A stretch of DNA of 63,821 nt, filler included, from Reticulomyxa filosa (GCA_000512085.1; 14 parts of 14 records of this genome joined end to end with filler, not necessarily neighbours in it); one strand, 5' to 3'; shown: positions 12,434 to 33,525, numbered from the whole stretch's first letter. Notes: a model not told the origin generated them from the sequence alone. Numbers and translations: made by a program.

Positions 12434-15400
12434 TCAAACGTGTGACTTAGAAGCAAATTTAGCTCTATAAGCGTCAACAAGCGCATTGCCTTTTGATCCA
12501 CCAGCATTTTTGAGAACAACCTCAGAAACTAAGTCGGTTAATTGATCTGAACCCTTCTTTGAATTAATTGCCAAGTTTTCGCATCGACCACCTGTAATAT
12601 TAGCAATCTGCAGAAAATTTTGTTGCGCTTTCTGGTCGACATAAAAAGCGTGGACTGGGATATTATGTTGTCTCAAAAGTGCAAGTTCATTTTCGTAATA
12701 TGTGGGATGAGAGAATAATTTTGTATTTTTCCAATAATTTTCTCCGAGTTTATTTTTTTTGGAATCTTTTCTTTTATTTATTACTTCTTCTTTTGTATTT
12801 GCTGCTGCGTCTCCAATTAAAATGATCTGCGAAACAGTTCCTTTTTGAACTTCTCTATTGATATGGACCAATCCAATTTCAATAGCTTCATTTCCCCATC
12901 CATAGTCAGCCTTAACACATTCCATAAAATTGTGAAGATTTTCAGGTTTAGATTCCCAAGTGGAGGACTGCAAAATCATATCTTCAGGAGCATTGTAATT
13001 TCGATACACAACAAATTGCATTTCGAAGCTGTTTGGAGGTTCTCCGTTATCTTTTAAAATAGTTGAAATACGTTCAAACATTATGCGTACTGCATGTTTA
13101 GCTTTTTGCAACAAACGATCCATAGAACCAGTTGCATCCATAAGCACTATTGTACGTGAAGATTTTTTCTCTTCCGTTCCTCTGTTCCGTTCACATAACA
13201 TTTTTTTCACTGTATTTACATCGTTTTTTTTTACAGCTGTAATTAGTTTCTCACTAAATTCGTGCTCTTTTGCAGCAAAAGCTACATATTTTTTGCTGTC
13301 TGCATATTGATCTTTAAAGAAGCTGTTTCGCTTTTCGTTGAGAAGTGGATAAAAATCGCCTGCACTGCGTGCCTTTTCAATTTCGTCTTTGGTAATCAAA
13401 AATCTCTCAAGTGACTTATCAGACAAGACCAAACTGTAAGAACCATTTCCTCCCTGTCTGGCTGTACGTCCTTTGATTTGCACTTCTTCTGATACTTCCT
13501 CCGAAAGGAAGGTTTGGATTACATGAGCCCCACCATTGGCATTTACAACTTGATCACGACAAATAAAGTCTGTTCCTCTACCAAAAGCTTTAGTATATAA
13601 TCCTATTCGTCCTGACGAAGTAGCACGTTTAATGAAAGATTCTTTCTCTTCAAAAGAATTTTCTTCCGTCATTACAATCGCACTGCTCTTCAACTCAAGA
13701 AAGTTGGATGACTCATAGAACTCCGTCAGTTGTTTTTTAGATTCGAAAAATACCAAGACAGCTCGCTTTGTTCCAGGATTTTTGCCAGTAATTCGATCGT
13801 CAATTTCTTTTTTGAGGGTAATGAAATAATCACTTTCACTGACAATAAGAATATCTTTTTTTTCGGCAAAGACAAGATTATTGTCACTAAACAAAGATGG
13901 CATATATGTGTGTTTGGAAACATGATAATCTTCCTCCACCACTTCTTGCTCTGGTGGACTCAGCGTTTTCAAGGTCCCACTCACTCCCATAATGCAATAA
14001 AAATTTCTCGGAACTTCGGCGTATGAAAAATTACCAATTTGAAATGAAATAAAGATATTATCTTTTAAGCTTTTGTTACTGATATTGTTTTGTGCATGTT
14101 CATGATAATATGCGAATAAAGTTTTGTATCCATAGCGAATATTGTAGCAAATACTGTCTTGCTCTTTGTATCCAATCTTGTCATTACTCACTTGATATCC
14201 ATGAGAGGTAAAGTCTTGAACATCACTCAACATGTCTTTAATTGCTTCATCTAATAATGAATCCCATCCTTTCAATATATTGCAACATGCTTTATATTCA
14301 TTGGATTGTTTCACATTGTTCAATTTTAAATTGGCTGATTTGTTATTCCAAATGTAATCAATAAGTTTTGTGATAGTGTCATGTCGCAAGATAGCGGCAG
14401 GAGAATAGCAGCTGCCGTAAAACTCGAGGTTAAAGAACACATCCACCTCATCGATTAATAGGACTTTGGAACGAACTACTCGCACCTGTTCCATGGTTTT
14501 TGAATCGTCACTAGGGAGAATCAAGTTTTCCACAAGTTTGCGCACATCACCTCCTTCATTATAATCCTTTCACAAATCTTGTTGAAAGTGCCATAATGGA
14601 TATGATTAATCACACCCAAGATATTGAATAATTGCTCAAAGCTCTTAAAATCTCTACTACTTAAATGTTCACTGTACGAGGCGCAACTCACATCAAAGCC
14701 AAGCAATGCCAACACACAAGAGGTAACAGCCAAAGTCACTGACTTGCCTTCGCCAGTCCCAATTTGAACCAAGTTTTTCGTTAATCCGACCTTGCTTTCA
14801 TCAATTCCTAACATTCGGAATATGGAAATGACCTGAGCCGGATGTGGTTGTAGCAAATAGCTGTCTTGATCCTCCGCCTCCTTGGCATCGTGGAAATAGT
14901 GTGAATTCTGAAGTGTCCATAGTGCAAAAATATGAGCCATCAAAATGGGGATTTTATTTCGAATATTTGCGTCCCATCGTTCTTGCCCTGGTTTTTGTTC
15001 GACGCCTCCAAAAATCAATTTTGTATTATTGGCAAGCATTGCAAATATGCTTGCATTGTTACTTTGACTTTTGGCCAAATTGTCCTTGAGCAATTGACAA
15101 TATTTCTCTTTAAATTCATTATACCTATTTTCCAATTTCGGGCCATCTAGTTTATCACCTTTGGTTTCTATTTTTTGCAAAACGTAGTCAAGTTCATGTG
15201 CCTGAATCTTTTGATTGAACATGGACACGGAATATCCCTGAAACACGCCATGTTCAGCGACAATCATCGCACCTATGCCACTTACGTCTTTTTCTAATTG
15301 CAATGCCAGCATTGAAACGCCAATGCCGCCTTGGTGCTTTTGTTTGAAGGCACTCAATAGTTTATCTATCTGTTTGCCAATGGAGTCTTTAAAGCTGAAG

Positions 15401-18400
15401 ATATGCATGGACATTTTTTTCATTGACAGTAAGTGTGGTACTATCTTTTCTGTATTCAAGTCTTGCATAGCCTCTTTTTCTAGTTGTTCCACTCGATTGG
15501 TTACCACAACGCTAACAGCTTCGATTTGGAGTTTTACAACACTTGAGAGGATTCCATGCTTCTGCATTGAGATAAAGCAATTGTAACAAAGATTTACATT
15601 ATTACAATCTAATGGCGTCCATTTGGTGTTGTCTTGCACTTTTTTTGCAAGCACTTGCACATCGAGTTCTAATTTTTTCGGACACTCTTCTAATTTCTCA
15701 GACTTGCCAATGTGCCTTTCCAATTGAGACATTTGTTTAAAGAACTCGATTTTGACTTTCAATTTATTGAAAAAGCGATCTCGTTCTGCATCATTAGATT
15801 TGGTCTTTTCGTTGTCAATTCCTTCGTCCATAGTGTCTTGTGCCATTTTCTCCAAACAAGCGTTAAGATCACGCATCACTTCGGCATATGTCCATATTTT
15901 GGTAGAGTCTTCTGGGAGACCGCAATACGTCTTTTTTTGTTTAAAGTGTTTCACCTTTTGCAACAGCGAACTCTTGCTTGCCACTGTTTCCATCACATCC
16001 AATACTTTATGCAAGTCAGGTACATTCAGCTGATCCACATTGGTTTTATACTTTTGATGAAGCGAAGTAAAGTATTTCGATATTTTCAAATCCAACTCTT
16101 TAATTCTGTCATTGAAATTGTTGGGCATCAATTCTTGTGCATCGGATGAAGTCAATTCAGCTTGTACTTCTATACATTGAATGATAAAATCAAGAGCATT
16201 TTCCATCCACTCCATAGTAGCGGATCCAATATCACCACGATCCAACACATCGAAATTGGAACCAATATTTTTTTGACACTTTTCAAAGGTATTGACTAGT
16301 GTGCCACGAGCTGTTGTAAAATATTTATTGATTTCGGGAATCTTTTTTTTAAATGTATTTTTGAAGTGAACAATTTCTTTCAAATCTATGAGCGCTTTAG
16401 TTGTGTCTCCTTCGGTCCATTTTTTATTCATGCTTACAACAATCTCTTGAGCCATCGCATTTACATTGGTCTTGATCATCTTTTCTTGATTGGATGTGCA
16501 GTTGTTCAACAGGTTGTTAATGTCGTCAATATTTTTCGATTTGATTACTTCATTAACAACGCCAGTGGTATGATCTAGTTCGCTCTTGATATCGTCATTA
16601 CAATGTGTAATCTCTTCTCCAAGCATTATTTGCATGTGTTTGGGTAAGGTATTCAACACTGATTGGCAAAGTCGAATTGAAGAATTGCTGTCTCGCGAGC
16701 TTGAATTGCCTACTTTCGCACGGGCTTCAATTAATTCATTTCGGACTTTCTGAGAGATGTCATCTTCAATCTCTCTCCATGTATCTCGATAAATTGCAGT
16801 CGTTTCCATGACTTTGATCAGTCTGGTATAAAGCTCTTTGGGTGGAGCTGACGAATAGGGATTAAATTGCTTACCCTCTAGTTTGATACGTCTGTACTTC
16901 TCCACAATATCTTTCAGCTTTGTTTCAATTTTTTTGCCGAGCTTATCTACGCAACTCATAATTTTACCAGTATTTTGATTTCCACTTTTTTTTTGCTGTT
17001 GTTCCTTCTTCGTGTCATCATCAAGCGAAATAGATTCACAATAATCACCTAAAATGCTGATAATTCTTCGAACCAATCGAATTTTATTTTCGGCCTCCAA
17101 AAAATTTAAAGCGCTGACTGATGCATCCATCGTATCCAGTATCGCTTCCATCCATTTTCCAATGGCAGACTTTGTGTTCTCTTGCATTCTTTCAATATCT
17201 CTTTGTACCACTTCATCCACAAATGTCAGTGCAAATTGTTGGGCGTCTTTCATCCATTCCAAATGATCGACTAGTTTGGTAACTCCGGTCAAGTCTACGT
17301 CATTTTCTCCCAGGAGAAGTACTTTCATCAACGTGGTTCTTGCCAAATCGTTCAACGAACGGGACAATGCATTTTTGATGTCATTGAACACCCTCTCAAT
17401 TTTTGGGTCATCGATATTCTGTTTGATTCGAAACATTTCCGCTGCAACGGTAGAGTATCTGTGTTCCTTGATAGCATCCAATACAGGTTTGGTATCAATG
17501 GTATCATTATAGATTTTGTCCTGATACTTCATATACAAATCCTTAAACTTGTAATTGGGCTTTGCAAAATCATCTAAAGCACTCAAAGCACTTGCTACGA
17601 CAATTTTGATTCGTAATGGTTTTGTGTTTGTGTCTCGATCCAATTTGAGCATTTCATCAGCCATTTTTTGATGTGTCTGTCTTAATTTGATTTCAAATTG
17701 TTCCAACATGTCTTCCGGGAAATATGCAAATATTGAACTTTTTTCCAGTTTCTTGACTTCGTTCAAGCGGTTGAAAATGATTTCCACTTTTTCAATTATT
17801 TTTGTGTTGTCACCACTTTCCGACACTGCGCTTTCTGTAAAATCCAAAGAATTGAGTTGGCTTTGAACAAATTTCGAATAATGTTGTAAAAAATGTTCCA
17901 CCAAGTCAAACGTATTGGCAACATCTTGTTTCAAAGGAGGAGCCGTTTTATAATCTTCTTTTTTTTCTTCACTGTTGCCATCGCCACGATCTCTGTTGGA
18001 TCGTTGATCTGGTGTAGTGGTTTCCGTTGAAAAGGCAGTGGCTTTGCATTCTTTCAAGTAACGGAGCACTTTTTCAGTTCTTGACACGTTTAACAGATCG
18101 AAATTGTGTCCGGTGCTGTTTTTGATCTTTGCAATCTCGCGTTCATAGTAGTGGATCTTTTCGTTGAGTTCATTTTCATTGTTAATCAGTCTTTGAATAT
18201 CACTTTGTAGAAAATTGTGACTCTTCAGCGCTTCCACAGTGGTGCCCAATGAAGAAAGCCCTTTTTGTAATAGATCTTCAAACTCTTTCCTTATTTGCTT
18301 ATTCTTCTGAAGCGTGTTCTTAATCTCGTCCATTTTTTGTGTGTGGGCGTCCTTGAGTTTTAGTGTTTCCGCTTTCAAGTTTTCCAGTGCCTTTTTTTTT

Positions 18401-21400
18401 TTCTTTTCTTCTTCTTGTACTTCTTCGATGGACTTGAATCCCTGTTTTCCGATGTACTCAACGGCCTCTTTTGATCCACTAGGTGACAAAAATGATGTGA
18501 TTGATGAGAAAGAATTACTTGCTTTGTTCAATTGATTATATTTTTGTTTCATCGCTTCCAATTTATTAATTCTCTCACGCACGATTTGGATTTTGCCATG
18601 ACGTTGTCCACATTTTTCTTTCAGCAAATGACAGCCCTTGGTCAATTCCTCCTCCATCTCTTGGATTTGAGACATAAGTTTCTGTGCATTTTCAATGTGC
18701 ATTTTTTTCAAATACGAATTGGCATTGCTAACGCACTCCGTTTTAAGCTGGATCAAATAGTCTTTGATTTTTTCTTGGCAGTTGACATTTTTCGTCTCCA
18801 AAGAAAATTCACGCCGAATGGTGGCCAATGTGGCTCGAATAGAATGTTCGAGTTGCATGCTCACCTCCTTGCGATTGGTAGATATTTTCGGGATAATTGT
18901 TTCCAAACGACGCAGATTACCAAGATGTGTGACGATTTTGCGTGCTTCAGCAAGTTGATTCGGGTGGTCCAGGTCTAATTCCAAATTTAAACTTGACTGT
19001 TGCAACTCGTACAAATGTGAGAATAACTTTTGTTTTATAGCATCCATTAGATTCGTGTTTCCTCCTTCTTGGCGCTCGTCGATCCACTTCGAATGACTCA
19101 CACAAAGCACACATTCATACAATCGATTGTAATCCACTGATGCATCTGACTTGCTCAACGAAGCGAGTATATTGTCAACATCTTTGTGTACATCACGCAC
19201 GAATCCGAAAATCTTTTCGATTGTTTGAAAGTACTGTCTTTCTGTTTTTTGTTCAACTGTTTTCACTTTTCGAAGATCGTCCATCACCAACACAAAACCC
19301 TTGATCTCGTCAAATGCTTGCGATTTCTGCTTTTCAAATAAATTGCAAATCTTTTGGCTTATTTTTTCAAAGTATCCGATTAATTCGATCAAAAACGAAC
19401 GGAACAGTTGTTTTGTAAATTTGTCGAGACCGACATGTTCCCAAGGCACTTCGAATACATTTACTGCTGCTTCTAAGGTATCAATTGTTTTTTGCACAAT
19501 GTCAATGCCATTTTTGTCAAGTTTTTCAAGCAAAATGTGAGCACTATCAATTTTTTCTTCATTTTTTATTGAAGACGAAGAGTTTGATATCTCTTTTGTC
19601 GACTTTTTCAAAACCGCAAGCCCTTCTTCTGTTGCACAGCGCTGGAGATAATCCGACAATTCACTTTCCAAGTTTTTAATCTCTTTTTTGATATCAATTA
19701 AAGAACAGATATGCTCTTGAATAGTGATGCCCTTTGCAATTGTTTTCAAATTTTTTTGAAACTCTGCAAACTTGTTCTTTGTAATGCATTCTTTTGCATC
19801 GTCGACACAATTGGCAAAGCGTTTCTTCAGTCTATGTCCTGCTTCTTTGTATGAAGCGCTAAAGGCAGGGAAACAGCTCTGCACTTGTGCCATTTTGTCC
19901 AAATGGATTTTTAATACGCTTTCTGCATTTCCCGACTCATCACCTCCGTTTATTTGTTGTTCGATGATTGCCATTAACTGATTCATTTGCTCATTGATGT
20001 TTTGGTTCAATGATTCCGCACTGGCAGCATCTGGTAAATGATTCCGCAATCCATTTGCCACTCCAAGTTCATCGTACACCTTTTTGTATGCCAAAACATC
20101 ATCGTTACTAAGATTATGTGGAGAGCTAATACGTTTGTTGAAAGCAGACTTGGCCTCGTCGCTTTTTTGGTTCCATTCTCGCGTCAACTTTTTCACACAA
20201 TCATTGATTTCCGTTTCGATAGTCGCATTCTTCAAAACCGAGTTCAGACGTGCGAGTTCGTCCAACTTTATTTTGGCAATGTTGTAATCACCACGTTGAA
20301 ACGCCAGCAAGATATTTTCTTTGTGCTTCTTTACTTGCAGGCTGACAGCTGACTTGGACGCCTCTGAAAGAAAAGGGCAGAATACGTCTTCGGGATGCGT
20401 AATAAAGTTTTTCAAGTCGATCAGTTCTTCTAACAAATCACTTGGCGAGTCGTGGATCAAGTCCGGCGCAATTACTTCTTTTTTTGTTTTTCTTGCGATA
20501 TCCAGCAAAATTGCTTTGTATCCTTCATCAGGATCATTTTCCATCGCATTGTACGTATCCTTTGCCAAAGCATGCATAAATGTCTTTTGCTCTTTAGGTA
20601 ATTTCGTGAATACGTATGAAAATGCACTGATGTGGTTTTCGATGGATGGGATAATCCCCACCAACGTACGTGCCAGCTCTTTCACGCAACTCATCCGATG
20701 TCCCAATGCGACATAACTGATCAACACCACTGGTTTTACGCTTTTGCACTGTTGCAAAGCTCGTATAATACCAATGCCATTGGCGACATCCACCTCAGGG
20801 CCATTGGTATCTTCAAATCCAGGAGTATCACAAAGTATCACGTTACCCTTTGCTCCAAGTATGCCCATCTCTTTCAAATCAATAGGAACCGCGGTAATGT
20901 ATCGTGTTTCCGACGCCGCTTTGGAACTGGTACTGACTCTGTGCAAAGCCTTATTTTTCACTTGCACAGGCGCAATGTGCGGTTTTCCGTCGACCAGTTT
21001 CTCCTGCATCACCGATCCAGCAAGAAAGTGAATACATGTGGATTTACCGGCCCCTGTCCCTCCAAGTAACAAGATCACATTTTGGTCTTTAATTTGTATC
21101 GCAGCTTTCTCTGCTTCATCTACTAACTCCAACATTAGATTGATATCGAAATACTCTTTCACCTTTTGACGTTTTACTTCATTGTCATTTTTTGGAATTT
21201 CAATTTCTAATAGTGAATTTTCATTGTCTTCAATAATCACACCATCTTCTAAAACGTCGAAATTTTGTTTGACAAGTTTGATTGTATCTATATTTGGCTG
21301 TCCTGTGATCAAATAATCTTTTGCATTTTTAGTTAATGTAAAGCCCAGCAAATCCAAAAATTCTCTCACCACTACAATTACCTCTTTTCCATTGGTATTA

Positions 21401-23158
21401 TTTTCTAACTTGTTAAGAATTGATCCCCAAGTTGAGTATATTTTGTCGCGATCTTCATCAGGTTTGATATTTAATAATGTATCAACCACTACGTTCATAA
21501 AGTCCTTGCATTCTTTATTATTGGCATTCAATTGTGACAATTTGTTCCCAATATCGGTCATGATTTGTATTGACGGCTTCACTGTTTTGTTGCTGTCCAC
21601 ACTTTGCACTGACTCCGAGTTTTGATATTGCTGCACTTTTGTTGTTTTCCTTGATTTCAATTTTTTGTTTGTTGATTTCAATACTTGATTTTTCCACTTC
21701 ATATTTCTTTTCATCATCATTTTCTTTATTCTCGTATTTCGCTTCTTCTAAGTCCTCTTTTTTTTTTGCTTTTGCATTCGACCCTTCTATTGGCTCATCT
21801 AAACTCGAATCTGAATTTTTGACAACAACTCGAAACACACCCAGACAATCTTGCTTTAGCATTTCTCCCCAAATATATTTTAAATCTCGTTCATCATCGA
21901 TTGTGTTGCTTTTATCTTGGGCATTTTGAAATTGTAAATCTTCATTTTCGAGTTGGAAGTGTTTCAACACATACTGTTTCATTTGTTGAAATGCGTTACG
22001 CCAATCATATTTTTCGATTTCTGTGGACAGCGGTGGACTGGAAGGGATCCAACTCACATAATGCCCATCATATTCAAATATAAAACATATCTATTTTCCA
22101 TATGCATGCACCTTTTTTTGTTTTCTCCTACTCTTTCACCCAAATTTAAAAAAAGGACGAACAACAATAATTTGAAAGGCTTCTGAGTTATCATCGTTCA
22201 ACAGTTCGTTAAAGTAATCACTTAATTCGTCAGCATATTCGATCATGTCATCTCTTTCGTCCATTCTCGACAACAGAAAAAGTTTTTCATTATTCTGCAA
22301 TTGCAAATGTTTAAACACTCGATCTCGTAATCCATTCCAATTTTTTTTCCACGTATCTTTCATCACTGCTTCGTTTGAGTCATTTACATGCTTTGGAGTG
22401 AATTCAAATAGCAATGAAGTACCATTTATTACATTAAATTTTTTTTCTTTCGTTTCCTTTATGTTATGTATGCACTATGTACTTTTATCCTATCTTTCTC
22501 TCCTTTTTTTTTTAATAAAAAGGGTAACTACCTCATATGAAAGAAATAATTCCAAAGTACTGTCTCCGCTGTCATTAATTTCTTCCCACTCTTGTTTTAA
22601 GTCATCGGCTCCTTCCACGTGAATTTCGTCTTTATTTTGTAATAAGAATTTCGACACTTTAAATTCGTTGTTAATATTTTTTATCAAGTCATTGTACACC
22701 TTTTCCCAATCGATATCTGCTTCACCCTCTTTCTCATCGATTAGTGCTTGTTCTATTTCTCGTTTGGTTACAGTATTTTTCACTACGATTTTGGAGTTGT
22801 TTTTTTTTTGTAACTCTAGTTTCTTTTTTTTTTTTGTGATTTTTTGAGTGAGAAAAAATATTGAGCAGAAAAAATATTGGCAGAAAAAAACTTAGTTAAC
22901 TTTAATCACAATCTCCAGTTCTTTTAGTCCTTTCACTGAATCTCCAAACTTTTGTGTGTCTGCGGGCAATATTGTTTCGCCGTTAATTTCAATTACAAAA
23001 TTCGAATTGGAAAAACACTCTGAAAATTTACTTCTAATGCCGTCGTATACATCGTCTAAATCCTTTTGGAAGTAGCTTTGAACTACGCCTCTCAATCTTT
23101 TTTTGATCGGTTTGCTGCCATCAGGAGTATAAATTGCAAGTACCTTTGAAATTGACAT
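12434..23158 (-). CDS. Giant ~3,500-aa protein: 4x PB1/beta-grasp-like + AIG1/septin-like P-loop GTPase + helical/coiled-coil + SecA-like DEAD ATPase + vWA (copy 1)
   Basis: Exons 23158-22901, 22822-22532, 22456-22163 and 22090-12434 (all introns GT-AG, phase 0), with two single-base frameshifts (~21640, ~14560). GTPase: LLLGGTGAGKST, SETRY, LCDTPGF, VFTK. SecA-type motifs: QIGTGEGKS, YSEHLSSRD, IHYGT, LIDEVD, MGVSGT, AVLVFF, FGRGTDF, GGAHVI, QIKGRTARQG. vWA: LMDATGSM, VVYRNY, GNEAIEIGL, ILIGDA. Confidence 0.88.
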
Positions 23159-25445: not shown

Positions 25446-26420
25446 TCACAAAGTATAAGACTTGGAAAATTTTGTTCTATAAGCGTCAACAAGTGCGTTC
25501 CCTTTTGCTCCTCCTGCATTTCTGAGTACTTCCTCAGAAACTAAGTTAGTTAATTGATCTGAGCCTTTCTCCGAATTGATTTCTAATTTCTCGCATCGAC
25601 CATTTGAAGCACGGGCAATCTCTTCAAAATTTTGTTTAGCGCGCATATCTACAAAGAAAGCATGCACATTGATTTTTTTGTCTTTGAGGATATTTAGTTC
25701 ATCTTCATAGTATGTGGGCGTGGAGAATAATGTTGTTCTTTGTCAATAGCTTCTCCACCACCAGTAAAATGTGTGACAAATCACTTTAAAGAAATTGGCG
25801 GGAATGGCGCCTTATGACTACTATTACCCCTCTTTTGTGTTACCTCTTCCTTGGTATTTGCTGGTGCATCTCCAATCAAAATAACCTGTGAAATAGTTGC
25901 TTTTTCGTGTTCTCTGTTAACATGGGCCAATCCCACTTCGATTGCTTCATTTCCCCATCCGTACTCTGGCTCCACAGTTTCCATAAACGTACGTAAATTC
26001 TTGGGCTTTGATTCCCACGGAGATGTTTGCAGAAGCATGTCTGCTGGTGCGTTGTAATTCCGATACACCACAAATTGCATTTCAAAGCTATTGGGACCTT
26101 TCAAAACGATAGCGATGCGTTCGAACATAGTGGTCACTGCATTTTTTGCTTTTTGCAACAAGTGATCCATGGAACCGGTTACATCCATTAAAATCACTGT
26201 TCGTGAAAGTGTTGCCTCTGCCCCTTTGTTTCGTTCACATAGCATTGCTTTGACCTCAGCGATCTTATTGCTCTTCAACGCCGTAATTAATTGTTGCCCC
26301 AATTTGTGCTCTTTTTCGGCTTGTTCCACAAATTTTTTGCTCTCTGCGTATTGAGTTTTAAAAAATTCATTTCGCTTTTTATTGAGCGTTGGATAAAAAT
26401 CGTTTTGTTTATTGGGATGC
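25446..26420 (-). pseudogene. Orphan, decayed copy of the vWA C-terminal region of the giant SecA-like proteins
   Basis: Homology starts at DFYPTLNKKRNEFFKTQY and includes LMDVTGSM, MQFVVYRNY, GWGNEAIEVGL and ILIGDAPAN, ending at DAYRTKF. It has an insertion at ~25760-25830, a frameshift, and TGA where the paralogs have the Trp of YW. Confidence 0.88.
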
Positions 26421-26609: not shown

Positions 26610-29600
26610 TCAAATGTACAAGTTAGGTGCAAATTTGATTCTATAAGCCTCAACAAGTTCATCACCTCTCGATCCACCAGCGTGTTTAAGAATTGTCGTA
26701 GAGACAACACCAGTTAATTGCTCTGAACCTTCATCTGAATTAATTTGTAATTCTGCACATTTACCACCTGAAGTACGGGCTATCGCTTCAAAATGTTCTT
26801 TTGCTTGTTCATTCACATAGAAGGCATGCACAGGGATATTACATTGTTCCAAGAGGTCAAGTTCTTTCTCATAGTAAGTGGGAATAGAGAAGTTTGTGCC
26901 TTTCCAATAGTATTCTCCTTTGATCTGTCTTTTCCTTGCCACTTCTTGTCTTGTATTTGGCGGCATGTCTCCAATCAAAATAACTTGTGAAACTTCCATT
27001 TTTTTGACTTGGGTATTGACATAAGCAAGCCCAATTTCAATAGCTTCATTTCCCAGTCCATACCCTGCACGAATGGTCTCCATAAACTCACGCAAATTAT
27101 CAGGTTTTGATTCCCAGGGAGAAGCTTGCAAAATCATATCTTCAGGTGCATTGTAATTGCGATACACCACAAACTGCATTTCAAAGCAATTGGGAGGTAA
27201 TCCATTATCTTTCAAAATGATTGAAATTCGATCAAACATAGTGCAAACTGTATTTTTTGTTTTTTGCAATAAATGCTGCATGGAACCAGTTGCATCCATA
27301 AGCACCACTGTGTATGAAGATTTTCTCTCTTCTGCTCCTTTGTTTTGCTCATATAACATTTTTTTCACTGTATTTACTTCTTTTCTTTTTACTGATGCAA
27401 TCAATTTTGCACTCAATTTGTGTTGTTTCGTAGCATATTCCACATATTTTTTATTCTCAGTGTATTGAGTTTTGAAGAATTCGTTTCGCTTTTTATCGAG
27501 CATCGAATAAAAGTCTCTTGCTTCACGTGCTCTCTGTATATCATCTCTGGTGATTAAAAATTTTTCAAGTGATTTATCACACAACACCAAACTATAAGAG
27601 CCGGATCCTCCTTGTCTGGCAGTACGCCCTTTAATTTGTACTTCCTCAGACAACTCTTCAGAAAGGAAAGCTTGAATCACATGTGGTCCACCATTGGAAG
27701 ATACAATTTCATCGCAACAAATAAAGTCCGTTCCTCGTCCAAATATTTTGGTAAATAATCCCACTTGACCAGAACTGGCAGCACGCTTAATGAGGAATTC
27801 TTTCTCTTCGAAAGAATTTTCTTCAGTCATTACAATTGCATCATTTTTAATCTCTGCAAAATTTGGTGATCCATAAAATTCCATTAATTGTTTTTTGGTC
27901 TCAAAGAACACCAATACAGCTCGTTTTGTTCCTGACATTTTCCCAACAAGTCGATCATTAATTTCTTTTTTAAGAGTAATGAAATAATCACTTTCATCCA
28001 CAATGAAAATGTCTACTTTTTCTGCAAAGGCGAGTTGGTTCTTGCTAAACAAAGACGGCATATAAGTATGTTTGGAAATATGATACTCTTTCTCCACCGC
28101 CTCTTGTTCAGATGAACTCAATGTCTCCAATGTCCCACTCACACCCATAATGCGATAGAAATGTTCGGGAACCGCTACATATGAGAAATTAACAATTCGC
28201 AACGTAAGGTGTATGTTGTTTTTGAAGCTACTATTACTAATTTTATTTTGCTCATGTTCATGATAATACGCAAACAAAGTCTTGTAACCATATCGAATAT
28301 TGTAAGAAATGTCATCTTGTTCTTTGTATCCAATTTTGTCATTGCTTACTTGATATCCATGAGATAAAAAGTTTTGAACATCATTCAACATATCTTTAAT
28401 CGCTTCATCCAACAATGAATCCCATCCTTTCAATACATTACAACATGCTTTGTATTCATTGGATTGTTTCACATCTTTCAATTTCAAAAACGATCCTCTT
28501 TTCTTCCAAATGAAGTCAACAAGTTTGGTAATGGTATCATGGCGTAATGTTGCTGCAGGTGAATAGCACTTGCCATAAAAGTCTTTGTTGAAAAATACAT
28601 CGACCTCGTCAACTAAAAGTATCTTTGAGCGAACCACTTCATTAGATTTTTTTTCTTCATTGTCATTACCAGGAAGGATTAAATTTTCAACAAGTTTGCG
28701 CACATCACCTCCTTCATTAATAATTCTTTCACAAATTTTGCCGAATGTACCATAATGAATATGATTAATTACACCTAAGATATTAAACAATTGCTCAAAA
28801 CTTTTGAAATCCCTGCTGCTCAAGTATTCACTGTAAGAAGCACAACTTACATCAAAGCCAAATAATGCTAATACACAACAAGTAATCGCCAAGGTTACCG
28901 ATTTCCCTTCTCCTGTTCCAATTTGAATCAAGTGATTTGTCAATCCTTTCTTTTTCTCTTCAACACCCAATATGCGGAATATGGAAATCACTTGAGCTGG
29001 ATGTGGTTGTACCAAATAAGACTTTTGATTGTCTACGCCTTTTGCATCATGATAGTATTGTACTTGTTGAAGTGTCCACAATGCAAAAATGTTAGCCATC
29101 ATTTCAGGAATGCTGTTTCGAATACTTGCATCCCAGTTTTCATCTTCTGGTATCTGTTTGATACCACGAGCACACAGTCTTGCATTATTTGCAAATACGT
29201 CAAGTTGTTTGGGATCTTCCTTGACTTTGAGCAGATTGTCATGCACAAGTTGGTTATATTTTGCGTAAAAGTCTTCATACATTTTCTTCAATTTCGATTT
29301 GTCGATTGGATCACCTTTGACTCTCATCTTATCCAAAACATGGTCAATCCCATGTGCTTTGATTTTTTGATTGAATAACGCAATAGAATATCCTTTAAAC
29401 ACACTATGCTCAGCAACAATCATTTTGCCCACTCCAGTTGATTCTTTTTCAAATTCTAATGCTAATGTAGCAATATTAAGACCACTACTGTTCTTTTTTT
29501 TGAAAGTATTCAATAGTTCATCAATGCGTTTATTAATATTATCTTTGAAGTCAAACATATTTACTGATATTATCTTCACTTTCACTAAGCAATTCACAAG

Positions 29601-32600
29601 ATTTTCTGGTCGTAAATCATCTATTGCATCTTTTTCCAATTGGCTGACTTGTTTGTTCACCATTGAATCAATGATTGTAATTTGGGATTTCGCAAAGTTT
29701 GAAAGAATTGAATATTTTTGCATAAAAATAAAGCATTTGTGCCAATGATTGAAGCAATTACAATCGGAGGGGCTCCACTTAGAAGTTTCCATAGTATTAA
29801 CAATTTGTTGTGTGCTTTGTTCTAATTGTTTCAAACGGGGTTCAAGTTTCTCAATGTTTGTAACGTGAGTTTTGCATTGAGACATTTGCGGTATAAAGTC
29901 AAGTGTATCTTTCATGTTTTGGAAATATTGATTTAGTTTCGCATCATTTGCTTTGGTGGTAGTATCATTGATTACTCCTTCATTGATCATATCATTTGAC
30001 ATTTTCTCCAAATGACTATTAAGAGCATTCATTATTTCCGAATACGTCCATAGATTGGTAGATGTGTTGGGGTCTTCAGGGATACCACAATCCATTTTTT
30101 TTTGTTTAAATGTTTTCAATTTTTGCAGAAAGTTATCATTGCCAACTATTTTCATGATGTCTAACACTTTTAGTAATTCTGGGACATTTTTTTTCTCGAT
30201 ATTGATTTTGAATTTCTTTTCCAACGACGAAAAAGAGTTGGAGATTCTTCTATCTAATTCTTTGATTTTCTGGTCGAAATCAAAGGGCATCACTTCATTA
30301 GCCTTATTTTTCACATCTGCCTTAAAATTCATGCATTGAATGAAAAATTCCAATAATTTTTCTATGGATTCCATTGTCTTGGGACTAACTTCACAACGAT
30401 CTAATGCATCCAAACTAGTTGTTGTTTTTTGTCGGATCTTTCCAAATTGATCAGTAAATGCGTTTCGAGTCGACTCGAAGCTGTTGTTAGCTGCAGATAG
30501 ATTTAGTTTTGCTGATTTAATATTGAGTAAATCTTTCAGATCCTTTAATACCCCAGTTACATCTTCGTTGGCCCATTTTTGATTTATCACTTCAACCATT
30601 TTTCGAATCATTATGGGTGCTTGGCGTTCAATCTCCTCGTTTTCAATGCTTGTACACTCATCCAAGAAATGATTAATATGATCAACGTTTTTGGTATTTA
30701 GTGCTTTATCTGCATTACGCATGGCCTTGTCCATGTTATCCTTAATTTCTGTTTCGCCTTGTTTCATATCTTTATCGAGCATTTCCTTCATGTGATCAGG
30801 CAAAACTGCTACTACTGTCTTGCACTGATTGATAACATGTTGAATTTGCATTGACGATTCTTTTTCCGTATCTCTACAGGCTGTTTTCAACTGAGCTCGA
30901 ACCTTTTTAAGAATAATATCTTCAATTTCTTTCCATTCGACTTCATACTTTGCAGTGATAAAATTGGCATAAATTTCATTGGGTGTGGGTGAAGAGGTAA
31001 ATTTAGGCAATGAACCATTTTTGAATCGATCTACAGTCTCTTTCAATTTGTTTTCAATAGCGTTCTTGAGTTGGTTCACGCGATTCATGATTTCACTTTT
31101 TCTTCCGTTCTTCCCTTCTTTCTTTGTGCGCTCCTTATTCGAAGAAATTAACTCATAGCAATCCCTTAAAATATCTGCCATATCTTGAATAAAACTGATT
31201 TTTTTTTTGCGTCCAAAAACTTCAAATTAGTCAATAATCTGTCGAATGCATCTAATTCCGTCTCCATATTTTTTTTAATATCAGATTTAACTTTCTTCAT
31301 TGTTGCAACAATTTCTTTTTTTGCCACCTCATTCACGAATTGAATGGCAGATTGTGCTTTTTTGATATATTCTAGACTATTCTTCAGTTCGTTCAGATTT
31401 TTAATATCTGCTTCGCTCTCCTCAAGTGGCAATACTTTTATTTTTTTGGCCAAGGTATACAAAGCTTCTGACAAAGAGGTTTTAATCTCATTGAATGATT
31501 TTTTTTTATTTGGATCGTCGGTTTTTTCAAGTTCATGCATTTTCATGGCAACGATAGAATATCGACGATTTCTGATCGCTTCCAGTACTGGTTTGATTTC
31601 AGTCTCATCGTGGTGGATTTTATTTTGGTACATCAAAAATAGATCACGAAATTTGTGATTGGGTTGAGCAAAATCATCCAATTCACTCAAAGCTTTAGCA
31701 ATTGTGACTTTTCTTTTCAATAATGCAGAGCTTGCTTCCATTATCGCCAACTTCGTCATCTCATCAGATAGATCCAAATACATTCGTTTCAATCGTTTGT
31801 CAAATTGTTCAATTATATCTTGTGGAAAGTATGTAAATATTGTTGGATAATCTTTTTGCAGTTTTTTGACTTCAGTCAATCGATCGGAAATACCTTCGAC
31901 CTCCTCAATCGTGCTTATATCACCGTCGTTGTTATTATCTTTTTTTTCATCATTGTTCGGCGTTACTCCACTTTCGGTAAGGTTCAAAGAATTAAGTTGA
32001 TTTTGAACAAAGATGGAATACTTTCGTAAAAATTCTTTCACCAAATTCAATGTGTTTGTGATTTCTTCTCTCAGAGGAACTACTGGTCTATGCTCTGTTT
32101 GTTTTTTTTCATCTTCATCATTGCCACTTGTACTAAATTGACTTGTTATTGTATCAACAGGGAAGCCGATGGCTTTGCATTCTTTCAAGTACTGCAATAC
32201 CTTTGCAGTTTTAGAAGCACTCAATACTTCAAAGGTGTACCCAGAATTTTTCTTTAATTTTGCAATTTCACGTTTGCATTGACGAATCTTGTCATTCAAT
32301 TCTTTTTTATTGTCGATTAAGCTCTGTACATCACTCTCCACAAATTCGTGACTCTTTAATGACTTACAAACACTTGCCAATGACATCTCTCCTTTTTGTA
32401 ATTGTTTTTCGTATTCTCTCTTTACTTGTTCGTCCTTGTCGAGTTTTTCTTTTAATTCCTTCATTTGTTTTTGATAACTTTCATTCATTCCTTTTTCTTC
32501 TTGTTTCAATTTTTCCAAATTCTGCTTTCCTTCTTCCACTCCTTCCATGGGCTGCTTGCTTGTTGTTTTCAAATAATGTATCGCTGCTTCCTTGTCGGAT

Positions 32601-33525
32601 GTCAACTGCGGAGATGTCGGTAACGAATTGGGGATGGAGTTTTCATTTTCATGCTCTTGCTTGGTTTCTTCTAATTGCGAAAGTTTTTCTTGGATTGCTT
32701 TTGTATTATCTTTATACTTTTGATCAGGCATAGTCATGATTTTGATCAATTCCTCTATTTTGATTTTCGTCACATTGATTTTCGAATCAAGATCTTTTGC
32801 ATTCTCAAACTTCATTTCCTGCAAATATGAATTGGCAGCACGGATATCTTCAGCACAAAATCTAAGTTGGATCAAACTCTCTTTCATCTTTTCTTGATTT
32901 GCCACATTTTTTGCTTCCAACGCAAATTCACGACGAATTGTAGCTAATATGGCTCGCACAGATTGCTCCAATGGACCACCCGCTTTTTGACGAAATGGGG
33001 TTAATTCCGGAATGGTCACTTCCAAACGACGCAAATTTCCAAGATGAGCAAAGACATTACGAGCGTCTTTGAAATGCTCAGGATGATCTAGATCAAGTTC
33101 CAATTCTTGACTTAATTGTTGCAATTCATGTAAATGCGATATCAGCTTTTGTTTTATGGTTTCCATCAAACTGCTGCTCCCATCTTCTTGACGTTCGTCA
33201 ATCCACTTTGAATTGCTCACACAACGAACACACTCACACAATCGATTGTAATCAATTGATACATTTTGTCTATTGAGAGAGCCAAGTATTGCATCAATGT
33301 CTTTTTGGATTTCGCGTACAAACGCATTTATTTTTTCGATAGTTTGATAATATTGACTTCCCGTCCTTTCTTTTACTACTTTCATGCCTCGAAGTTCTTC
33401 CATCACCAAAATCAATTTTTTGATTTCATCAAATGCTTGATACCTTTTTTTTTTAAACAGGTTCAAAATCTCTTGTCCAACTTTTTCAAAATATTCAATT
33501 ATTTCATTTACAAATGAACGAACTA
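26610..33525 (-). CDS. Giant SecA-like ATPase + vWA protein, tandem paralog (copy 2), 5' end cut by the contig boundary
   Basis: ORFs 33466-31166 and 31181-26610 are joined by a 1-nt shift in an A10 run (31199-31208). The frame is open to the contig end. Collinear with copy 1: QIGTGEGKS, LVDEVD, MGVSGT, FGRGTDF, QIKGRTARQG, LMDATGSM. Confidence 0.9.

Follow-up and report, generated by a model that had tools for sequence, protein, structure and literature searches.

SecA is known as a motor tied to one job, that of pushing preproteins through SecYEG. What, then, is a SecA-like ATPase doing near the end of a giant protein encoded at positions 12434–23158 (minus strand) of the DNA analyzed here, a window of 63,821 nucleotides joined from 14 parts of the genome of the naked foraminiferan Reticulomyxa filosa? 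A first-pass annotation had read this locus as one reconstructable gene of about 3,500 amino acids (aa) for a eukaryotic, cytosolic protein with four PB1-like units, a GTPase, a helical rod, a SecA-like ATPase and a von Willebrand factor A (vWA) domain. Our analysis showed that 12434–23158 is a spliced nuclear gene with a predicted product of about 3,500 aa, belonging to a family of soluble proteins of about 3,000–3,500 aa. The conserved core of this family consists, in order, of a GIMAP/Toc34-like G domain, a family-specific region of about 1,700 aa, a SecA-type motor and an integrin-beta-I-like vWA domain. We regard this architecture as near certain. The functional part of our explanation, in which the protein would serve as a nucleotide-driven protein remodeller in host–microbe conflict, is drawn by analogy with known machines and is more tentative, lying below an even chance but not far below it. 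The explanation as a whole, architecture and role together, we hold in even balance.

The motifs that define these parts were all recovered on the minus strand, in the order given by the first-pass annotation and within 0–3 nt of where it had placed them. Counted in residues, G1 of the G domain is followed by G3 at +78 and, after about 1,650–2,000 aa, by motif I of the motor, with motif II at +102, III at +155, V at +135, VI at +37 and the metal-ion-dependent adhesion site (MIDAS) of the vWA domain at +111. The same order with near-fixed spacing was found in about 40 of 51 homologues (proteins of 2.4–3.7 thousand aa), and uninterrupted bacterial open reading frames (ORFs) of 3,010–3,376 aa display an identical motif order. 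The whole motif set was also present on one transcriptome contig in each of two eukaryotes, Sulcionema specki (7.9-kb transcript) and Endostelium zonatum. The proposal that the GTPase, SecA-like and vWA parts belong to a single protein is thus borne out by about 40 homologues, including these two eukaryotic transcriptome contigs. Inspection for hydrophobic stretches revealed no signal peptide and no transmembrane stretch, in agreement with the predicted cytosolic location without a targeting peptide.

The R. filosa locus lies on a single 22,538-bp contig of that genome (10988–33525; own-genome placement G000:C3559), on which the long ORFs are all on the minus strand, at 14521–21720 (2,399 codons) and 12434–14545 (703 codons), with short ones up to 23206. 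The GC content is 34–43% in coding sequence and 19–30% in flanking and intergenic DNA, and frames of 2,399 and 703 codons in DNA of about 37% GC cannot be due to chance. A database search gave 100% identity between the longer frame and the public protein RFI_03864 (P0001, 2,780 aa), through which the spliced N-terminus was studied. This protein maps onto 23158..14524 as five exons separated by four introns of about 70–78 nt, each GT..AG. The closest non-foraminiferal relatives include bacterial ORFs, which could suggest that the contig is a bacterial contamination of the assembly. The introns and the difference in GC content between coding and intergenic DNA argue against this, as do the lack of bacterial genes on the contig and the presence in the same assembly of at least 55 matching places, 51–83% identical and spread over more than 40 contigs; the probability of contamination appears negligible.

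The public model stops short of the full architecture. Its fifth exon (14524..21510, minus strand; RFI_03864 residues 452–2780, a 100% tblastn match) runs to an out-of-frame stop at 14521–14523, because the assembly is one base short relative to the tandem paralogue at 14559–14562 (minus strand), where the focal copy reads ATTATAATGAA and the paralogue ATTATTAATGAA. Beyond this site the ATPase of the same protein is continued by the other frame, the 703-codon ORF (12434..14545, minus strand, stop codon 12434–12436 included), which stays open through the rest of the motor and the vWA domain. The reading of the locus as one gene of about 3,500 aa is therefore upheld by the frames and the motif order, but it needs a 1-nt frame correction near 14559–14562. 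Taken at face value, the model end at 14524 would mean two genes, one for a protein made of the GTPase and the rod and one for a second protein whose start lies within the motor and which comprises the second nucleotide-binding domain (NBD2) of that motor and the vWA domain. We find this very improbable: motif I of the first nucleotide-binding domain (NBD1) would be severed from motif II, and the frame runs on through this point in the tandem paralogue and in about 40 homologues, among them uninterrupted bacterial ORFs and the two transcriptome contigs. Given where it cuts NBD1, the public split is best read as a frame-change artefact, and the present single-gene reading corrects a model, RFI_03864, that is truncated inside the motor.

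The tandem paralogue (26610..33525, minus strand) is itself truncated by the contig edge and is 46% identical to the focal copy in the central region and 70% identical in the ATPase–vWA module. Comparison of the two copies gave ratios of nonsynonymous to synonymous substitution rates (dN/dS) of 0.16 for the motor–vWA part (697 codons) and 0.12–0.24 for the central region, with dS near saturation, values that suggest purifying selection between the tandem copies along their whole length. The 1-nt frame change in the focal copy must stem either from an error of assembly or from an inactivation that took place very recently. In the latter case the focal copy would be a recently inactivated pseudogene, and the locus would yield at most a 2,780-aa protein that has lost the vWA domain and the larger part of the motor; we take this as a serious possibility that nevertheless falls clearly short of even. 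The frame change is present in the assembly, outside any long homopolymer, and the family does shed copies: several R. filosa loci carry 8–14 in-frame stops (e.g. C26708:8789-10891, C26932:1263-3824 and C22115:9592-12051) while many others are intact, a pattern that looks like birth-and-death, and 200 bp away from the neighbouring gene there is a vWA-only fragment. On the other hand, the 703 codons past the break have remained open in AT-rich DNA with a dN/dS of 0.16 against the paralogue, so that any inactivation must be very recent. Moreover, the neighbouring paralogue shows a frame change of its own inside an A10 run (31199–31208; T on the plus strand), a type of homopolymer that is a typical site of assembly errors, and the R. 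filosa draft genome is reportedly built largely from pyrosequencing reads. The vWA-only fragment (25464..26401, minus strand) is a truncated third copy in which tblastn with paralogue module residues 584–879 found nothing beyond the scaffold helix and vWA domain, split over two frames with 65% and 51% identity; it is probably a pseudogene fragment. This third copy starts about 200 bp downstream of the stop codon of the paralogue.

To which class does the ATPase belong? The motor–vWA module was studied through the tandem paralogue as a stand-in (26613–29264, minus strand), whose last 884 residues were modelled from 25 sequences with a predicted local distance difference test (pLDDT) score of 85.8. 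SecA and SecA2 account for all of the 36 best Foldseek matches of this model (E-values down to 2e-18), and DEAD-box helicases and vWA domains rank next. Structural alignment with VIA-align gave a Z-score of 29.4 for SecA over 537 aligned residues (model 1–686 versus SecA 28–750), compared with about 19 for DEAD-box helicases. When the family profile was searched against the PDB, SecA reached 1e-19 and the next family, Mss116, 1e-5. Among 25 members, Pfam SecA_DEAD matched all 25 and P-loop_SecA 21. Foldseek, VIA-align and profile searches thus all favor a SecA-type ATPase over another family of superfamily 2 (SF2), in line with the original prediction for this locus.

In the focal gene, where all the following positions are on the minus strand, the N-terminal part of the motor occupies 14563..15063 and comprises lead-in helices followed by NBD1, whose motif I, TGEGKS, lies at 14740–14757 (Pfam SecA_DEAD 1.5e-7; alignment to the paralogue model). 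Motif II, DEVD, was located by motif search at 14441–14452. The stretch that separates motif II from motif III contains an inserted domain of about 146 aa (13997..14434), in the position that the preprotein cross-linking domain (PPXD) occupies in SecA; it was delimited from the secondary structure of the model with coordinates transferred from the paralogue. Both the profile and the VIA-align alignments to SecA pass through this insert, and Pfam SecA_PP_bind gave no match to it. NBD2 (13391..13996; Pfam Helicase_C 1.5e-6 and a weak P-loop_SecA match) harbors motif III, GVSGT, at 13973–13987, motif V, GRGTD, at 13568–13582 and motif VI, QIKGRTARQG, at 13451–13480. It is followed by post-motor helices (13172..13390, from the model secondary structure), including one of about 42 residues comparable to the SecA scaffold helix, in keeping with a VIA-align alignment that reaches SecA residue 750.

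Regarding the parts that engage the channel, no SecA_SW match was obtained in the 25 members, and the wing domain, the two-helix finger and the C-terminal tail were not detected; the secondary structure of the model leaves only about 70 helical residues between NBD2 and the vWA domain. The curated NCBIfam models of SecA scored at best 61 bits against cut-offs of 725–1085, and the motor is not a SecA orthologue. The sequence and the predicted structure support a SecA-type motor with a PPXD-site insert and a scaffold-like helix that lacks the SecY-engaging parts. It shares with SecA and SecA2 the motif order, the presence of an insert in the PPXD position and a long helix after NBD2. Unlike SecA, it is built into a polypeptide of about 3,500 aa, where it lies towards the C-terminus with a vWA domain after it, and a membrane-channel context is lacking.

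SecA motors descended from DEAD-box helicases, and the position of these helicases as next-best structural matches leaves room for a different substrate: the SecA-like module could act on RNA or DNA rather than polypeptides, as an SF2 helicase or translocase involved in antiviral sensing or restriction. This seems quite improbable to us. SecA is ahead of the helicases by some 10 Z units and, in E-value, by 14 orders of magnitude, the motifs TGEGKS, DEVD, GVSGT, GRGTD and GRxARQG are those of the SecA type, and an insert is found at the PPXD site. In addition, Pfam and profile searches of the focal protein, of the members and of their N-terminal regions detected no nucleic-acid-binding or nuclease domain. 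A motor acting on polypeptides remains the reading followed below.

The terminal domain (12449..13165, minus strand; VIA-align and sequence alignment) had been predicted to be a vWA domain with a DxTxS variant of the MIDAS motif, and both the fold and the metal-site residues agree. VIA-align superposed residues 648–868 of the model on integrin beta I-like domains with a Z-score of 18.6 and a root-mean-square deviation of 2.8 over 194 residues, and the vWA domain of CMG2 was among the Foldseek matches of the motor–vWA model. The putative MIDAS set consists of DATGS (13124–13138), the glutamate of NEAIE (12878–12892) and the aspartate of LIGD (12809–12820); in 15 sequences, the DxTxS motif, this glutamate and this aspartate show little or no variation. 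Sequence and model thus both support a vWA domain of the integrin beta I type in which the predicted MIDAS site is intact.

A model of the G domain (20374..21186, minus strand) was built from 17 family members (pLDDT 86.9). Its first Foldseek matches were GIMAP7, GIMAP1, GIMAP2, GIMAP5 and Toc34, with E-values of 6e-7 to 1e-5 and template-modelling (TM) scores of 0.45–0.6, and the model supports a TRAFAC fold nearest to GIMAP and Toc. None of the Pfam matches reached the threshold; they were to MMR_HSR1 in all 17 members, Dynamin_N in 13, Septin in 6 and AIG1 in 11, the last with a best value of 9.4e-4 and the gathering score not reached. Among the Pfam families that had been anticipated for this protein, SecA_DEAD and Helicase_C were found, whereas AIG1 and MMR_HSR1 appeared below threshold only.

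Motif search located G1, GGTGAGKS, at 21040–21063, a G2-like SETRYIT at 20893–20913, G3, DTPG, at 20818–20829 and a G4-like FTKLP at 20596–20610 (all minus strand). Across the family, G-x4-GK[ST], the threonine of G2 and D-x-P-G are invariant. The fourth motif takes the form TK[YFL]x, and the canonical [NT]KxD with its aspartate is found in only about 4 of 17 members. The intact G1, G2 and G3 reported by the first-pass annotation are thus confirmed; its candidate G4 is present as a G4-like sequence but lacks the aspartate. The GIMAP/AIG1/Toc34 ("paraseptin") GTPases provide the best fold match (GIMAP7, E 6e-7) and share the conserved G1, G2 threonine and G3. Compared with them, the G domain of the family is only 12–18% identical, remains below the AIG1 threshold and mostly lacks the G4 aspartate.

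Between the G domain and the motor, domain searches and a conservation profile delimited a family-specific central region of about 1,770 aa (15064..20373, minus strand) with no known domain. Pfam, NCBIfam and PADLOC gave no match to it, and an atlas search gave no usable one. With the exception of one variable insert, the conservation profile showed that it can be aligned between bacterial and eukaryotic members. We assume from its sequence character that it is helical.

The N-terminus differs by lineage. In R. filosa it consists of four exon-sized units that share a motif, seen by eye in the alignment of paralogues. Exon 1 (22901..23158, minus strand; exact mapping of RFI_03864 residues 1–86) provides the start codon and unit 1 of about 86 aa, a candidate beta-grasp or PB1-like domain. 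Unit 2 corresponds to exon 2 (22532..22822, minus strand; residues 87–183) and unit 3, which is common to the R. filosa paralogues, to exon 3 (22163..22456, minus strand; residues 184–281). Exon 4 (21584..22090, minus strand; residues 282–450) encodes unit 4 and a Lys/Glu-rich linker. No Pfam match was obtained for the units up to an E-value of 10, and BLASTP found no self-similarity among them. Their language-model neighbours were ubiquitin-like, PB1, CIDE-N and TDP-43_N clusters (0.76–0.81), which has the value of a lead. Four units, the number given in the first-pass annotation, are thus present and are candidates for a beta-grasp fold, while their assignment to PB1 is a lead on which Pfam is silent. 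A domain search in the N-termini of 31 homologues yielded no more than a single U-box and two additional P-loop domains. The latter lie upstream of the G domain in the Rotaria members P0025 and P0026, with matches to AAA_22, nSTAND3 and AAA_16.

Where else does this architecture occur? An exhaustive profile search with the whole motor–vWA module retrieved more than 150 cluster representatives at E <1e-232 and 1,711 at E up to 1e-30. Besides the foraminiferan, the family was found in bdelloid rotifers (Rotaria and Adineta), a ciliate (Blepharisma stoltei), a diplomonad (Hexamita inflata), a diplonemid (Sulcionema specki), a chrysophyte (Epipyxis sp.) and an amoebozoan (Endostelium zonatum), a patchy distribution among eukaryotes. 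In bacteria, a 3,376-aa ORF (L001) is located amid ordinary bacterial genes on a 126-kb metagenome contig, and ORFs with the full architecture adjoin dnaE in a metagenome-assembled genome (MAG) of Legionellales, lie near nadA on a 2.9-Mb gammaproteobacterial contig and occur in a Chlamydiae MAG. Both flanks of the L001 member (L001:1-9798 and 20330-22738) encode large TPR_12/TPR_10/NPHP3-like repeat proteins. Seventy-nine bacterial loci with a related motor include 12 from Legionellales, 16 from Chlamydiota, 5 from Mycoavidus-type Burkholderiales and 1 from Wolbachia (Rickettsiales); the Wolbachia locus (L017) matches the motor with 31% identity. On the bacterial side, the family thus occurs in groups that are intracellular or associated with protists. 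Searched in a phage collection, the motor–vWA module had no match in phage WO, where only an unrelated vWA protein was recovered. Homologues are named in the databases only as "SecA family profile domain-containing protein" or "hypothetical protein".

One bacterial MAG member (L006:3120-12266, P0014) carries a U-box ahead of the GTPase (Pfam E 1.9e-9). A U-box is useful only where a ubiquitin system exists, and finding one at this N-terminus implies that the bacterial protein acts within eukaryotic cells. The neighbouring genes encode MFS transporters and a WD40 protein. Elsewhere, a gammaproteobacterial ORF of 2,136 aa (L026:8393-14800, on a 3.8-Mb contig) contains two SecA-like motors in tandem, with motifs I, II, III and VI each occurring twice. 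Proteins of about 1,000 aa with a SecA-like motor and neither GTPase nor vWA were observed in Legionella nautarum, L. drancourtii, Coxiella, Parachlamydiaceae and Simkaniaceae (L023, L025, L045, L046 and L067).

The motor–vWA module is 45–58% identical between bacteria and eukaryotes, and members from the two domains of life are interleaved in the trees. Forcing the eukaryotic sequences into one clade cost 50 log-likelihood units and was disfavored by the approximately unbiased (AU) test with a p of 0.011, for a constraint set after the first tree had been inspected. The label "eukaryotic" given to the protein in the first-pass annotation is therefore incomplete for the family, which shows the same architecture in bona fide bacterial genomes. 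The motor-only bacterial proteins of about 1,000 aa, in which motif I lies near residue 300, form a well-supported sister group; rooting with these ATPase-only relatives gave no resolved base and hence no direction of transfer.

What could such a protein do? In the explanation that we propose, it would act in the eukaryotic cytosol as a nucleotide-driven protein remodeller. Eukaryotes would use it in defence of the host, and in bacteria it would be a translocated effector. First, the MIDAS of the vWA domain would grip an acidic residue of the target and dock the protein there; MIDAS domains hold an acidic residue of their partner in this way in midasin and in MoxR–vWA pairs. Secondly, the SecA-like clamp, powered by ATP, would exert a pull on a segment of polypeptide or unfold it, just as in SecA an unfolded polypeptide is clamped and moved between the PPXD and NBD2. 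Thirdly, the GTPase and the N-terminal units, of an oligomerisation type, would gate assembly on a membrane or target surface; nucleotide-dependent assembly on membranes is characteristic of GIMAP, Toc and septin-type GTPases. By its logic, the protein could be viewed as an SF2 counterpart of the AAA+/MIDAS machines, midasin and MoxR–vWA, a view that we infer by analogy. The expansion of copies with decay, the variable N-termini, the exchange with intracellular bacteria and the U-box variant point to host–microbe conflict as the setting. A bolder version, in which a SecA motor was removed from export and placed in a GTPase-gated, MIDAS-gripping cytosolic machine that is traded between intracellular bacteria and their hosts and used by both sides, we consider doubtful.

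Several observations weigh against this explanation. Expansion and horizontal transfer fit roles in conflict without proving them. PADLOC returned no defence-system match for the motor–vWA part or the central region and only a weak, P-loop-level match for the G domain. The G4 of the focal protein (FTKLP) lacks its aspartate, which makes guanine specificity uncertain. Finally, the focal copy itself may be dead owing to its frame change.

Trafficking and scaffolding are further tasks of vWA domains and of GTPases of the GIMAP, Toc and septin types, and the protein could instead have a housekeeping role in eukaryotes, such as remodelling of membranes, organelles or the cytoskeleton in the reticulopodial network, with the bacterial copies as effectors that mimic it. 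The purifying selection along the whole length and the 45–58% identity of the motor–vWA module across very distant hosts would be compatible with such a role. Against it stand the very patchy distribution among eukaryotes, the dozens of R. filosa copies with their pseudogenes and the lineage-specific N-termini; patchiness, copy number and N-terminal variability of this kind are unusual for a core housekeeping factor, and we judge a housekeeping role unlikely. Should the role in host–microbe conflict prove true, the family would represent a new class of protein-remodelling machine in such conflicts and show clearly how a 10-kb gene can be exchanged between domains of life. It spans Legionellales, Chlamydiae and at least seven eukaryotic lineages.

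SecA-like and GIMAP-type domains have been noted before in proteins of this kind. Zhang et al. 2012 (PMC3482391) list a GIMAP-type GTPase and a SecA-like, helicase-related domain for the effectors of Amoebophilus, a symbiont of amoebae. Bordenstein and Bordenstein 2016 (PMC5062602) place in the eukaryotic association module of phage WO a type of SecA domain closer to invertebrates than to bacteria, and West-Roberts et al. 2023 (bioRxiv 10.1101/2023.11.21.568195) report giant bacterial proteins with a divergent SecA_DEAD without scaffold and wing. As far as these excerpts go, the proteins of endosymbiotic and predatory bacteria, such as those of Amoebophilus, phage WO and Omnitrophota, resemble the present family in carrying a divergent SecA_DEAD motor without scaffold and wing in a very large protein, and differ from it by their many transmembrane segments and by toxin, OTU or glycosyltransferase domains. 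No description of the G domain/central region/SecA-like/vWA core or of its eukaryotic members was found in the literature searched, within the parts of the articles accessible to us. The first-pass statement that the architecture was undescribed thus stands for the family to the extent covered by these texts, but not for its SecA-like and GIMAP-type domains, which figure in PMC3482391 and PMC5062602. What is new, judged from sequence, would be a known type of motor in an undescribed and widespread architecture.

With midasin/Rea1 and the MoxR–vWA pairs, the family may share a logic, that of an NTP-driven motor combined with a MIDAS vWA domain that could hold a substrate under force. It differs from them in that its motor is of the SF2/SecA type and not an AAA+ ring, and homology is limited to the vWA fold. 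The matches to midasin were confined to the P-loop. The GVIN/VLIG proteins, GBPs and RNF213 offer an analogy only: they too are very large NTPases of the cytosol that have helical extensions and have expanded in particular lineages. Neither by sequence nor by fold were they matched here, and the NTPase classes differ. The family places a clearly SecA-type motor, without channel-engaging parts, beside an immunity-type GTPase and a MIDAS domain in abundant giant proteins. If the bolder version of our explanation is true, this would be the first use of a SecA motor outside a translocon and in the eukaryotic cytosol, and an SF2 analogue of midasin.

The remaining observations concern the non-coding parts of the locus. 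Rfam gave no match anywhere in the piece. The four GT..AG introns of the focal gene (minus strand) were mapped at 22823–22900 (78 nt), 22457–22531 (75 nt), 22091–22162 (72 nt) and about 21513–21582 (about 70 nt). The lengths of the first three are all multiples of three, and intron 1 contains a tandem repeat of a 16-nt unit, present in 2.5 copies at 22851–22889.

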